A stretch of DNA of 64,000 bases from Pavona decussata (taxonomy: Eukaryota), in contig CDRNST010000096.1 of NCBI GenBank assembly GCA_977016875.1, forward strand, positions 1,860,001 through 1,924,000. The letters run 5' to 3'. Shown one piece after another: positions 1 through 64,000 of the stretch. The position numbers and the translations under genes were made by a program. Numbering within the stretch: the stretch's first letter is position 1; each line of letters starts with the position of its first letter. The notes under the pieces are model-generated. The model ran no database searches and was not told the DNA's origin. It was given only the letters and a program-made list of their open reading frames with translations.

Positions 1-1
1 T

Positions 2-268
2 GAAAGGAGTTTCTTATTAACGGTCCGGGACCGTCTTTAGCTCCGGGAGCCAGTTTTGAAAGGAGTTTGTTATTAACGGTCCGGGACCGTTTTGGCTCCG
101 GGAGCCGGCTTTAAAGGAGTTTAGTCTTTACGGTCCGGTCCGGGACCGTATTTTTTGCTCCGGGAGCCAGCTTTGTAAGCGGTTTGTTATTACGGTCCGG
201 GGACCGTTATTAGCTCCGCGGGCCAGTCTCAGGGTTTGTTGTTTACCGTACGGGACCATCCTTTGGCC
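2..268 (+). repeat. Degenerate ~56-bp tandem repeat (4-5 units) in the DIRS 5' region
   Basis: Unit AAAGGAGTTT..TTAACGGTCCGGGACCGT..GCTCCGGGAGCCAG starts at ~2, 58, 113, 177 and 231. Units carry the small palindromes ACGGTCC-G-GGACCGT and GCTCC-G-GGAGC. Confidence 0.85.
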
Positions 269-791
269 TCAGAAACACAGTTTTGTGTTTATTGTTAGAC
301 GTTCGGAACCCGTTTCCTTAGGGTACGGTTTCGTGGTTCCGGGACCCCGCTGTTTTATAGGATTTTGTGCGTTTGGTCCTAGACCCTCAGGTATTCAGAC
401 CCCGCCTACGTTTTTGGAAAGAATATCGTTTTAAATTTTAGCTTTCTTAGTGTTTCACCTTAGGCTGTATCACTCAAGGGCTGACCCTCTTTTTGCTTTC
501 GTATTTACGATTTCTGTCCGCGCGGCTCCGGGGCTGTTTGTCTCTAAGCGATCTTTTCTTTGTGTTTCGGGATCGTTCAACCCTTAACAGCTTTTTGGTT
601 CCACACAGAAGTTTTTGTTCAGTTCACCGCCCGGTTTGTTTAGTTAAGAGATCATCGTTAGGTCGGTTAGGACGGCTTATATTTTAACGTTTGCGTTTGT
701 TTATCTGGTTGGGAAGAGACATATCTGGACCACTCGCGTTTTGTCTGGGCCCTCGCTTAACCCTAGGTGTTCCTTTTTCGACCTCTCTTAG

Positions 792-1298
792 GCTGATGAT
801 CGCATTAAACTCCTGGAAGATAAACTTAAAGTTCTGGAGGAGAAACAGGGTACTAACACCGTCACAGCGGCCCTTTCATCTGTACGTAATGCCCTTCAGA
901 AGCCAGGAACGGTTTATGATCCTTGGGAGGCGTCCGCCCACGTAGAGGCCCTGGTGCGGGCGGCCAGATCTGTCGCCCATGAGAAAGCAGACTACTATGC
1001 CGCAATTTTAGATGAGTTAAAGGGGAGATCCAACTCTCTCTCTCCTTCTGCACACCAGAGTTTACTCTTGGGCCTTTTGGGTGATCCAACCAGAGCGAAG
1101 GTGGCCAAGGAATCATCAGCGCTCCTTAAAGCTATACATCGTGAGGAGCCTTCGCTATTTAGCCGTCCCAGCTCTCGCCAGCTCAGGCGCCAACGCCCTT
1201 ATCCCCCCAGTCAGCCTATTTGCTACAGATGCGGCTTGCCTGGGCATTTTGCGAGGGCTTGTAATCGCGGACGAGGTCGTGGGATTTATAGGCGTTAA
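792..1298 (+). CDS. gag: DIRS Gag-like protein with CCHC zinc knuckle
   Basis: Open frame from 792 (ADDRIKLLEDKLKVLEEKQ...) continuous with ORF 954..1298. Contains the CYRCGLPGHFARAC knuckle and an RGRGRG tail. Preceded by acceptor CTCTCTTAG. Confidence 0.85.
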   Translation, partial: ADDRIKLLEDKLKVLEEKQGTNTVTAALSSVRNALQKPGTVYDPWEASAHVEALVRAARSVAHEKADYYAAILDELKGRSNSLSPSAHQSLLLGLLGDPTRAKVAKESSALLKAIHREEPSLFSRPSSRQLRRQRPYPPSQPICYRCGLPGHFARACNRGRGRGIYRR

Positions 1299-1696
1299 GG
1301 AATAGCTGTGAATCGCGATTTTTTGTGCATTGTCATTTCTGAAGCTGTTTGAGTTGCTTGTAAACACGTTTGATTGTTTTCTTTAATCGGGGTTGCCTTA
1401 GGCCTTTTATCCCTTTGCTGTAATTTATATTTTGAACAGTGACGTCGTTTTACTTTAGTTTGTTGCTGTGCCAATTTTGTTGTTCTTGTTCATTTCTGTT
1501 TTGCTTAATAAAGACTTTGCTAAATGTTATTTGTCTCCCCGTCCTTTTAGCCTTTGCCTTATTTCTTCGTTGACTCTGGGGGTATCTCTAAGTGCCTTAT
1601 TCTGGTCTTTGATCAGAGCTGGGGTCAACGAAGGATAAGGGGTCCTGCCTCCTTTCCTTTTTCCAATTTTTATTTGCGTTTCTCCGTTTGTTTCAG

Positions 1697-61310: not shown

Positions 61311-61329
61311 ATACAGGCATAACTAACAT

Positions 61330-62108
61330 TACCCTGGGTGCCAGAGTCTTTTCATGCATGGTTTCCGGTTTTGAGTCTCCAAAGTGACCCAAGTGAAAAG
61401 CCTCTGGACAAAAGCATGATCCCTTTGATAGCGCTGAGCCAATTACAACCCTGCTTATACCCAACATCCAGAATCTGGATGTTTTGCTGATAGGTTCCTT
61501 GGAGACGTTGAATGTTTCAAATGCTCTGATTAAATAACAATCACAATAGGCGCATGGGCGGGATGCAGGTGATTTGAAGGTGACAAAAATCCATTCCAAA
61601 CAATCCAAGCACATTACATGTACGTTTTCCGCTTTTTACTTGCGAAGAGAATTGGAAATATCAAATGACTCTACGAACGGAAGATTTAAATAAGGCAATA
61701 GCCGAAGTCATTGGAACATTCAATGGTGTAAATTATTTGCAAAGGAAAGACATATTGCTGGTCTTGCCGACCGGCTATGGAAAATCACTGCTGTTTCAGT
61801 TCCTACCTGGCATATGCCAGCTACTTACCCAAAGAAAGCCATTATTTTAGTTACTGGCCAGTTGAACGCTCTTATTGAATCACACATGAGGGAGTTGGAG
61901 CAGAGAAGCATTTCATGTTCTTGTGCATGTGATTTCTGTAGGAAAACCGCCAGTTTGATTGACAGATTAGAGACAAGGTCAAAGTCCATCTAGCATAGTA
62001 AATCAAGGTGCTCTCCACCAGAGGCTTTTTCTTGCTAATTCGCTGCTTGTGCCTTTGGCCAACAAAGCTCCCCGTTGCACGCGAGAAAAACCTCTGGTAC
62101 CCAGGGTA
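61330..62108 (+). mobile_element. Academ(H)-like remnant with a RecQ-type helicase N-terminal fragment (61665-61920)
   Basis: KDILLVLPTGYGKSLLFQFLP (motif I) and LNALIESHMREL (motif Ia). Bounded by TACCCTGGGTGCCAGAG and CTCTGGTACCCAGGGTA; no TSD seen. Confidence 0.6.
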
Positions 62109-63144
62109 ACGCTGACAGCTACAACAAGAACTACAAAAACTTGGTAGGCGTATTCATATCAAACATTATGGTTTAAATTTTTTAAGACAATAACCCTTTT
62201 GTTGTCTCTCCGTAGGGATTTTTCTGTCCTGTTTCGCGAAATTATAATCGAGTCAAATTGGATTCAGTCTACAACTTGTTGCTGACGACAATTTTTTCTT
62301 AACGGTAGCCTACTTAAGAAAACGAAAACAAACTAACTGGGCGTACGTCAACAGGTTTGCCTAAGTTTTTGTCGTACCACACGCCCATGGTTTGGCCTAA
62401 CCCAGCCTTTATACGCTATGCTACTTTGAAAATGACTTCTGTTTAAAATTCGGGCGTGGCTTAATAATTATTTAACCAATTGCGCCTGGATCTATGAAAA
62501 TGATAAATGAAATCAGAACTGTTGTCGATTGGCAAGAAGACAAGTTTTTCTTTTTCACCTTTTCACGTTTAAATGATTTCACATTATCGCAAATCGTTCT
62601 ACTGCTAAAAAAAACAAAGAAAAGGAAGGAAGAAATACAGTGAAGACACACCGCTTTCTGTAGAGAGTGCATGAAAAGACGGGTTTACTTAAACTGTTGT
62701 TAGGCCTATTGTTTTTTGGCCTATTGAAGCAAGTAAACATTGCTGTTGAAGGTAAAACAATAGGTGCGTTTTTCGCACCTTTTTTCGTTTCAGTGATTTT
62801 ATTCTCCGGTTGGCCAAAAATTCTCAAGTAAAAATCTTTGTCGTTGCATTCATTGAGTAAAAAAAATGAGTGTGAAGGGTTTGGAATTGCCTGCGCAAAC
62901 CGTTGTTTTTTTCCCTTTTTTCGTGACGACTCCCTTCCTTGCGTGCACTAAGGTTTATCACAGATTTGTCTTTGATCCTTAACTACACCACGCTGTTCAA
63001 AGATAAACGGGGGTGGGCCATTCACTAATTGAGAGTATTGATTTGCAGTTGAAAAGTTCATTTAAATTTTAGTCATGAAGCTTGCATATAAAACTCTCGT
63101 AAACGCAAGTTATAATCACTTTATTGAGATAAGAGCAAAGAAAC

Positions 63145-63500
63145 ATGAGTAAGTCCTATGAAGTATCGAAAGTGGTCGATAAGCGTACACATGCTCATGG
63201 TCGCATTCAGCACCTCATTCGCTGGTGTGGCTATGGAAAGAACTACGATAGCTGGGTGGACAAGCAATACAAACGAGCGCCTAAAACAAGTGTTTAGGAC
63301 ATGCCACCAAGGAACTCCAGGCCCTCTGCAGGCCCTCTGCAGACCTTGGCAGTGTTGCAGAAAAGCTGAACATGAAGAAACTGCCAACAACCAGTATCGT
63401 GAGACGTGGGTCCGTCACCATGACGATGGATGCTGAGACCTTTAAAGAGTTGTTCGGTAGTCTTCCTTCCGTGCCAAATCTTTTGCGAGCCCATTCTCGA
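63145..63500 (+). pseudogene. Second chromodomain protein (intronless, frameshifted)
   Basis: ATG at 63145: MSKSYEVSKVVDKRTHAHGRIQHLIRWCGYGKNYDSWVD (this frame is not in the ORF track), then VAEKLNMKKLP..RRGSVTMTMDAETFKELFG. Confidence 0.8.
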
Positions 63501-64000
63501 GCTTGTTGCCATAATGACTGCCGGATGGCCATTAAACACTTGCACTTAGGACGCAAAAAAAGTGTTTTTTGATAATTCAGGGTGTTTGCGCTGTCAAAGC
63601 GGGAATGGAGCCCCTGTTGCTTGTAAAGACATGGTGCAGAAAGTTTAACTCTTTTAAAGGCACCGTGGGCGGAACAAGCAAGCCAAGGAAAAGCCCAAGG
63701 AGTGCATGGGACTAACCTGGGCGAAACCAAGATCAGTTGCCAAGTAGACAACAGTGACCTTCTGCTGGGTAGTCACTTAAACAAACGGCTCTTTAAGGAG
63801 CCACCAAATATAAGAAAGCGATGACCAACTCGAATGTGTGATACTCATTTATTTATCTTTTCTGGCCCTTTTTTATATTCGTTACTTGCCTTAAAAAAGA
63901 TCAGTATTCAAGCTGCTTCGATTTGAACCGAAAGTTTCCTGCGCCTCAATCGCACTGATTGTGTGCATCCCTGGGGTTGGTTTTATAATTATGTAACTCC

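Follow-up and report, generated by a model that had tools for sequence, protein, structure and literature searches.

Strand orientation of nested transposons in a 64-kb stretch of the Pavona decussata genome

Do the transposons crowded into one stretch of the genome of the coral Pavona decussata share a direction because the locus makes PIWI-interacting RNAs (piRNAs) against them, or is the shared direction a matter of chance? The stretch, hereafter referred to as the window, comprises the 64,000 nucleotides at positions 1860001-1924000 of contig C96 (CDRNST010000096.1) and lies about 130 kb from the end of this 2,057,441-bp contig, in an assembly of 602 Mb and 1,180 contigs. A first-pass annotation, made from the letters of the DNA, had described strong co-orientation of independent insertions on the plus strand (about 25:5) and proposed a uni-strand piRNA cluster resembling the flamenco locus of Drosophila. 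The present analysis finds a plus-strand excess that is real but modest, about 2:1 per insertion, and carried wholly by seven retroelements. The window is regarded, with moderate confidence, as an ordinary gene-poor transposon island, the strand excess of which most likely arose by chance among a few coin-flip insertions.

A total of 143 stop-to-stop open reading frames (ORFs) of at least 80 amino acids (aa), from both strands, were scanned against Pfam, and element boundaries and ages were obtained by matching the window against its own genome, to which the coded contigs named below (C50, C56, C83 etc.) belong. Pfam recognised no host domain, either in the window or in the flank pieces nearest to it, and the earlier description of the window as transposon remains with no recognisable host gene is thus upheld. 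The content consists of nested and fragmented transposons of many families, both young and old, which include DIRS, three pieces of long interspersed nuclear elements (LINEs), two Penelope-like pieces, a Helitron-like element, Harbinger and Tc1-like DNA transposons, miniature inverted-repeat transposable elements (MITEs) and unclassified elements, as is also true of any transposon island. The transposon domains recognised by Pfam on the plus strand are zf-CCHC, RNase H, ALOG, tyrosine recombinase, DUF6570, Helitron_like_N, DUF3987, GIY-YIG (twice) and zf-RVT, together with ALKBH8_N, matched weakly by the LINE piece at 44.7-45.2 kb; those on the minus strand are DDE_Tnp_4 of the Harbinger element (E=1e-29) and a weak HTH_33.

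Insertions into older insertions occur throughout. A LINE fragment and the Harbinger element lie inside the Helitron-like element, a 4.6-kb two-gene element and a 485-bp MITE inside an old low-copy element, and a 720-bp MITE inside the element at 50.6-58.5 kb, while a 1.2-kb element bounded by terminal inverted repeats (TIRs) interrupts the LINE at 43.4-45.5 kb. The identities of the elements to their other genomic copies range from 77 to 98%, and the insertions have therefore piled up over a long period. Many families have landed in and on each other here, presumably since insertions do little harm; some of the insertions are young (DIRS, the MITEs and a Penelope-derived fragment, 94-98% identical to their copies) and others old (77-86%). 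The plus excess most likely arose by chance from a small number of independent coin-flip insertions. The anatomy, the tallies, the genome-wide independence of orientation and the lack of RNA contigs are observed here; that the excess has no selective or mechanistic cause is inferred.

Strand tallies in the window

Simple ORF counts lean heavily to the plus strand, with plus:minus ratios of 48:29 at a minimum length of 100 aa, 24:5 at 150 aa, 13:1 at 200 aa and 7:0 at 300 aa. With the base composition of the window, chance alone would yield about three ORFs of at least 100 aa, so that most of those observed are coding remnants or opposite-strand shadows. The ORFs are also not independent of each other, as DIRS alone gives eight plus ORFs of at least 100 aa and the element at 16.4-20.7 kb gives four plus ORFs together with six minus ORFs that are their shadows. 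Counted per independent insertion, the tally is about 15 plus to 8 minus (binomial p=0.21), and it is 11:2 (p=0.022) for insertions with an ORF of at least 150 aa. An algorithmic count of islands, which merges neighbouring same-strand ORFs and is therefore conservative, gives 12:9, 10:4 and 7:2 at 100, 120 and 150 aa, respectively. The p values of the window tallies run from 0.02 to 0.66 according to the criterion, and the plus bias ends at about 61 kb.

The plus tally (about 15) comprises DIRS, the Helitron-like element, the LINE at 7.3 kb, an A-tailed repeat at 13.4 kb, the 16.4-kb element, the DUF3987 element (mainly plus), the Penelope-like element at 34.4 kb, a LINE tail, the LINE at 44.6 kb, the Penelope fragment at 48 kb, the element at 50.6-58.5 kb and unknowns at 40.7-42.3, 46.4-47.2, 49.8-50.8 and 59.1-59.8 kb. 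The minus tally (about 8) comprises the Harbinger element, the Tc1-like element, the TIR element at 43.5 kb, small ORFs at 34.0, 37.7, 47.9 and 58.6 kb and two old repeats at 61.3-64 kb. The identified retroelements are 7:0 in favour of plus (p=0.016), and the DNA transposons and unclassified elements stand at about 8:8. Of the strong co-orientation proposed earlier, the direction stands, as long ORFs and tallies do lean plus, and the size, about 25:5, gives way to about 15:8. The earlier tally was inflated by the counting of several ORFs of one element, the orienting of unorientable elements and the discounting of minus-strand ones, namely the Harbinger element, the Tc1/IS630-like element at 38.4-40.5 kb, the TIR element at 43.46-44.67 kb and the old repeats at 61.3-64 kb, all of which are real.

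Searches with protein libraries were performed on both strands of the window and the flanks. A library of 120 LINE reverse transcriptases (RTs), fetched with a minus-strand flank ORF as the query and applied by tblastn and as a hidden Markov model (HMM), located two window pieces, at 7.3-8.2 and 44.6-45.3 kb, both on the plus strand and none on the minus; a Penelope-like library of 120 proteins was applied by tblastn. A strand-neutral library of flank-ORF proteins matched eight plus and three minus loci in the window. Two further means of orienting decayed fragments were tried and rejected. A codon-usage coding scan trained on flank ORFs proved powerless, the codon usage of the transposons being too near the background, and AT skew was dropped as a marker because the plus-oriented DIRS element is strongly T-rich.

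Flanks, genome background and transcription

The flanks were sampled as alternate 10-kb pieces (left 1.66-1.85 Mb, right 1.924-2.034 Mb; pieces are labelled L004, L005, L017 etc.). All sampled pieces are transposon-rich, for at least 200 kb leftward and about 120 kb rightward. The left-flank retroelements are 2:5, comprising one plus and one minus LINE, a plus long terminal repeat (LTR) element, a further minus LINE, a minus Gypsy element and two more minus LINE fragments. Those of the right flank are 6:1, comprising Penelope-like elements on plus, minus and plus, two plus LINE fragments, a plus tyrosine-recombinase element and a weak plus LINE. Segmental duplication was rejected as the source of the co-oriented copies, the LINE and Penelope-like pieces having only 25-50% aa identity to flank copies. 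The nearest recognisable host gene is a minus-strand linker-histone H1 gene 126 kb to the right of the window (L017:6486-7073, equivalent to C96:2050486-2051073; Pfam Linker_histone, E=6e-26), which lies 6 kb from the contig end.

The genome background was examined with the best-scoring RVT_1, rve, DDE_Tnp_4, DDE_3 and LINE RT matches genome-wide, which left 621 oriented markers once tandem arrays had been collapsed. Marker pairs 10-200 kb apart are on the same strand in 74 cases and on opposite strands in 80; the same:opposite counts are 48:61 across families, 24:18 for retroelement-retroelement pairs and 9:4 for LINE-LINE pairs. An apparent genome-wide co-orientation of LINEs was rejected, as the 8:0 of the first list became 9:4 once 67 more LINE markers were added. 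The orientations of neighbouring transposons are therefore independent in general, and the plain binomial is the right null. Under this null, about 147 of approximately 9,410 windows of this size are expected to reach a skew at the 7:0 level and about 17 at the 13:1 level; among 783 annotated windows the corresponding numbers are about 12 and about 1.4. The 13:1 obtained when the right-flank samples are added to the window (p=0.002) departs most strongly from coin flips; about 17 windows of this kind are nevertheless to be expected in the genome. At the genome scale, the skew of the window lies within chance.

The same counts bear on a bias in the insertion mechanism, whereby target-primed reverse transcription, as used by LINEs and Penelope-like elements, would favour a particular strand with respect to fork direction, so that a replication domain fills with co-oriented copies. 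Such a replication-linked strand preference has been reported for human L1, and most of the co-oriented elements here are indeed LINE or Penelope-like. However, the genome-wide LINE-LINE ratio is not significant (p=0.27), and two of its nine same-strand pairs resemble segmental duplicates. Elements with another mechanism, namely DIRS and the tyrosine-recombinase elements, are also plus, and the reported effect sizes are far below 13:1. This explanation is considered highly improbable.

RNA evidence came from assembled contigs of sequencing runs, the RNA label of which is a guess; the libraries are probably poly(A) and carry no strand information. In the mostly low-copy interval 21-31 kb, 0.00-0.05 of the sampled words are present in RNA-like runs (14 of this species, drawn from five studies), compared with 0.52-0.59 in DNA-like runs. 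At 51.9-57.9 kb, 27 of 30 bins are covered by a DNA control at single-copy depth; the only sequences contributed there by two RNA-like runs are unitigs of 53-73 nt, on both strands, on the 720-bp MITE, and a third run places nothing. No RNA-like contig falls on 52.9-57.9 kb. No spliced joints are seen in the RNA-like contigs over these 6 kb, nor is a long transcript visible in the assembled, probably poly(A), contigs. The absence of RNA contigs counts weakly against either a piRNA precursor or an intron.

Several observations weigh against attributing the skew to chance. The retroelement excess continues into the right flank at 6:1 (one-sided p=0.06), and the combined 13:1 of window and right flank differs from the 2:5 of the left flank (Fisher p=0.006), in partitions picked post hoc. 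The pair test is sparse, rests mostly on intact copies and would not register special domains that make up only a few percent of the genome. Selection acting within a transcription unit would leave just such an excess, limited to retroelements, and a rapidly processed precursor would be missed by assembled, probably poly(A), RNA contigs. Since the excess continues rightward and is limited to retroelements, a transcription-linked cause is kept alive.

One such cause would be a long minus-strand unit other than a piRNA precursor, either a giant host intron or a long non-coding RNA, from which sense retroelements with polyadenylation or splice signals would be purged and in which DNA transposons would be tolerated whichever way they point. 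The contrast between 7:0 for retroelements and balance among the DNA and unclassified elements agrees with it, class-specific strand bias of retroelements being a known signature of intronic selection. On the other hand, the window and the nearest flank pieces yielded neither a host exon nor a Pfam domain of host type, RNA contigs, whether spliced or not, were not seen, and both flanks are also transposon-rich over the distances given above. An intron of 60-170 kb would moreover be exceptional for a coral, and we consider a unit of this kind very unlikely.

The other transcription-linked cause is the uni-strand, flamenco-like piRNA locus proposed earlier, with a leftward precursor from the minus strand, a promoter to the right, possibly at 2.03-2.05 Mb, retention of antisense insertions and silencing of retroelements by the resulting piRNAs. 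In its favour stand the 7:0 of the window and the 13:1 with the right-flank samples, the many unrelated nested families, which include currently active ones, and the fact that no host gene was seen before the minus-strand H1 gene. However, the locus yields no RNA-like contigs, one right-flank Penelope-like element is minus, and a trap selecting antisense insertions of all classes predicts more than about 2:1 and is at odds with the 8:8 of the DNA and unclassified elements. The bias also ends near 61 kb, the left flank leans the other way, and with 74:80 pairs and more than 100 windows at 7:0 expected, the skew is not beyond chance at the genome scale. A locus of this type is therefore regarded as rather unlikely. 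Nothing positive supports a long minus-strand piRNA precursor, and the data do not tell a piRNA source from chance.

Individual elements

The coordinates of the elements are collected in Table 1, and the remaining evidence on each is given below.

Table 1. Transposable elements and repeats of the window. Positions are those of the 64,000-nucleotide window; a point in the strand column marks elements that carry no strand call.
Element	Position	Strand	Remarks
DIRS-like retrotransposon	1-5820	+	Extends past the left edge; young, many copies
Helitron-like element, three pieces	6334-7629, 8330-9151, 12306-13236	+	Pieces split by two later insertions
LINE RT fragment inside Helitron-like element	7309-8331	+	Separate repeat family; tblastn and HMM
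Harbinger/PIF DNA transposon nested in Helitron-like element	9152-12305	-	Span is the gap in collinearity with C83
A-tailed repeat with 205-aa plus ORF	13386-15035	+	A-rich 3' end; copies at 85-92% end at 15035
4.3-kb coding element, unclassified family	16428-20699	+	Four collinear plus ORFs of 147, 437, 423 and 187 aa (~1,200 aa of open frames)
Old low-copy element with later insertions	21746-32000	.	Orientation cannot be called
Two-gene insertion	24132-28777	.	DUF3987-like ORFs plus, 26075-27727 (weak match); convergent ORF minus, 28195-28596
485-bp high-copy MITE with TIRs	29304-29788	.	>30 copies at 94-97%; cannot be oriented
Penelope-like retroelement (RT and GIY-YIG endonuclease)	34392-36708	+	Weak GIY-YIG match; tblastn with Penelope-like library
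LINE 3' end with A-rich tail	36776-37660	+	Weak zf-RVT match on 36712-37278
Tc1/IS630-like DNA transposon remnant	38366-40519	-	Weak HTH_33 on 40205-40519 (-)
LINE fragment, RT C-terminal part at 44586-45323, microsatellite tail	43375-45534	+	LINE RT library and HMM, E=4e-18
1.2-kb high-copy element, TIRs and minus ORF remnant	43461-44667	-	95% copies; minus-frame similarity to a flank ORF
Penelope-derived high-copy fragment	48031-49082	+	245-bp inverted termini; 216-aa plus ORF; >35 copies at 97-98%
Element collinear with C56:2469851-2473148, with two extra blocks	50596-58468	+	Short plus ORFs only; one extra block is the 720-bp MITE
720-bp TTAA-flanked MITE	52064-52776	not orientable	TTAAGGTTACC inverted termini; within the 50.6-58.5 kb element
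Two old repeats	61330-62110 and 62166-64000	-	Longest ORFs minus; copies at 77-90%

In the DIRS element, Pfam recognises zf-CCHC, RNase H, and ALOG together with a tyrosine recombinase, all on plus ORFs between 792 and 5181, and at least 20 genomic copies are 97-98% identical to the element over 1-5820. The Helitron-like pieces are collinear with C83:897414-900520 (89-95%). DUF6570 is matched weakly at 12378-12722, and Helitron_like_N matches one plus ORF of 80-99 aa (E=2.4e-9). The LINE fragment inside the Helitron-like element matches the LINE RT model at 7502-8172 on the plus strand (E=3e-20). The DDE_Tnp_4 domain of the Harbinger transposase lies at 10763-11380 on the minus strand, with protein matches to flank copies, and the second ORF of this element, at 9169-9810, is on the plus strand. 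An array of five Harbinger transposase units at 9.3-kb spacing was also observed in the genome-wide transposase search.

The repeat at 13386-15035 has an AATAAA followed by A-runs at 15009-15030 and is probably a poly(A)-tailed retroposon; its 205-aa ORF has no PDB match. For the 4.3-kb coding element, a single other genomic copy was found (97%, C273:2887045-2892121); its ORFs have no Pfam or PDB match, and an ESM Atlas search with the largest ORF gave only noise (0.78). The old low-copy element has collinear counterparts at C415:133687-138831 and at three further loci (84-86%), and the two-gene insertion corresponds to a gap in the C415 collinearity. Within the old element, a 27-bp tandem repeat at 30661-31240 encodes PSVQPAPGP-like units (TRF and translation) and generates long but false ORFs at 30.1-31.8 kb, three on each strand. 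The pair of the two-gene insertion, a DUF3987-like gene and a convergent one, recurs in the same layout at L004:5672-7757, 130 kb to the left, with 37-56% protein identity.

The Penelope-like element has 244 homologues, many with RVT_1 and GIY-YIG, the closest named ones being from Porites evermanni and P. lobata (66-83% identity), and the Penelope-like library matches it at 34392-35131 and 35572-36708, both on plus. Copies of the LINE tail (many, at 92-95%) sit about 0.8 kb downstream of RVT_1 matches on the same strand, for example C50:1783962-1784720 and C50:1785556-1786437. The Tc1/IS630-like remnant is 92-94% identical to C514:1-1861, which has DDE_3 on the corresponding strand and from which the DDE assignment here is taken. 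Elsewhere in the genome, Tc1-like (DDE_3) transposase genes with intact frames of 315-384 aa form head-to-tail arrays of 6-13 units at 2.4-3.7 kb spacing (C511:1721-27696, C347:105863-131602, C114:2216986-2261607, C294:1288159-1300645, C82:1935887-1949202 and also C139:5263-42899). The LINE fragment at 43375-45534 is collinear with C167 and C215 across the 1.2-kb insertion. In the left flank, the plus-strand frame at L005:6264-9998 (C96:1746264-1749998) encodes a 1,245-aa LTR retrotransposon product with the integrase upstream of the RT and a SCAN match in gag (E=1.6e-9), a layout which we take to be that of Gmr1-like Gypsy elements.

The Penelope-derived fragment shows a weak GIY-YIG match and a weak match to the Penelope-like library at 48451-48636 on the plus strand. 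The ORFs of the element at 50596-58468, earlier read as a RAG1/Transib-like multi-exon gene, gave no Pfam or PDB match when tested, and no RNA transcript is visible across them. More widely, PDB sequence searches with nine ORFs, including the "RAG1-like" and "chromo" pieces, returned nothing usable. The 720-bp MITE has a DNA word depth of about 100,000, compared with 25-45 for the single-copy sequence on either side, and must therefore be present in thousands of copies. Positions 52060-52782 are missing from one DNA contig, which represents either an empty-site allele or the paralogous C56 copy. In the second old repeat, a 163-aa minus ORF at 63284-63772 has seven homologues at 46-56% identity and is without a Pfam domain. 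The same repeat contains, on the plus strand at 63782-63827, an Rfam Histone3 stem-loop match of 24.8 bits (gathering score 34), the region of which is 88% identical over 50 bp to L017:6415-6464, just downstream of the H1 gene. About 500 bp upstream of this stem-loop, a 55-aa plus ORF at 63133-63297 appears chromodomain-like by eye only (YEVSKVVDKR...LIRWCGYG...DSW).

Other items of the first-pass annotation fared variously. In place of five LINE/L1 pieces, three LINE pieces were found. The short high-copy elements located, 485 bp at 29.3 kb and 720 bp at 52.1 kb, are MITEs with TIRs and without orientation, not short interspersed nuclear elements (SINEs), and ARAGORN found no tRNA-like heads in the window. 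Rfam returned no SINE head, hammerhead or other RNA at the gathering score or at E values up to 1, the sole match of note being the sub-threshold histone stem-loop, and the hammerhead proposed at 38.0 kb was thus not recovered. The Zator, Kolobok, Academ and RPA items were not located.

Comparison with known systems and significance

The window resembles known transposon islands or graveyards in its dense nested insertions, its many families and ages, its lack of host genes and the presence of MITEs inside older elements; nothing essential differs, and the moderate plus excess of retroelements is its only unusual aspect. With the Drosophila flamenco locus it shares retroelement fragments over tens to hundreds of kb that lie mostly one way, with a minus-strand H1 gene at the far right, where a promoter could be. 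It differs from flamenco in an overall bias of only about 2:1, in unbiased DNA transposons and in a left neighbourhood of the opposite orientation, its co-oriented elements are mostly LINE, Penelope-like or DIRS and not env-bearing LTR elements, and no precursor transcript is seen for it in the RNA-like contigs.

Comparison within the phylum points both ways for a piRNA locus. Uni-strand clusters are the norm in Nematostella, where 402 of 457 piRNA clusters, defined with proTRAC, are uni-stranded (PMC5731801), and a review likewise characterises the piRNA loci of cnidarians as uni-strand and complementary to transposons (PMC9923473). A uni-strand locus here would accordingly join a type that is already established. 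In adult tissue of Porites evermanni, however, proTRAC defined only 107 clusters, of which 84.7% overlap genes, with a transposon density below expectation and none described as a large co-oriented trap; the study itself cautions that the germ-cell content was low and the reference fragmented (PMC13343488). No large transposon-trap piRNA cluster has so far been described in a coral.

It is conceivable, although unlikely, that a retroelement trap some 170 kb long, with a minus-strand, flamenco-like precursor, spans C96 from approximately 1.86 to 2.03 Mb with the window at its left end, and that this trap is one of a set in the genome. If so, these would be the first transposon-trap clusters described in a coral, missing from the adult-tissue sets as germline or stem-cell specific; traps of the flamenco type, known in detail only from Drosophila, would then exist in corals and offer loci in which to study coral genome defence.

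If the window is an ordinary transposon island, which is the preferred reading, its significance is chiefly cautionary. When a transposon-rich genome is examined window by window, strand-skewed windows are to be expected by chance, and counts of ORFs in place of counts of insertions overstate the skew. The independence of orientation measured here, 74 same-strand to 80 opposite-strand pairs, provides a background for later claims of strand skew on this genome.

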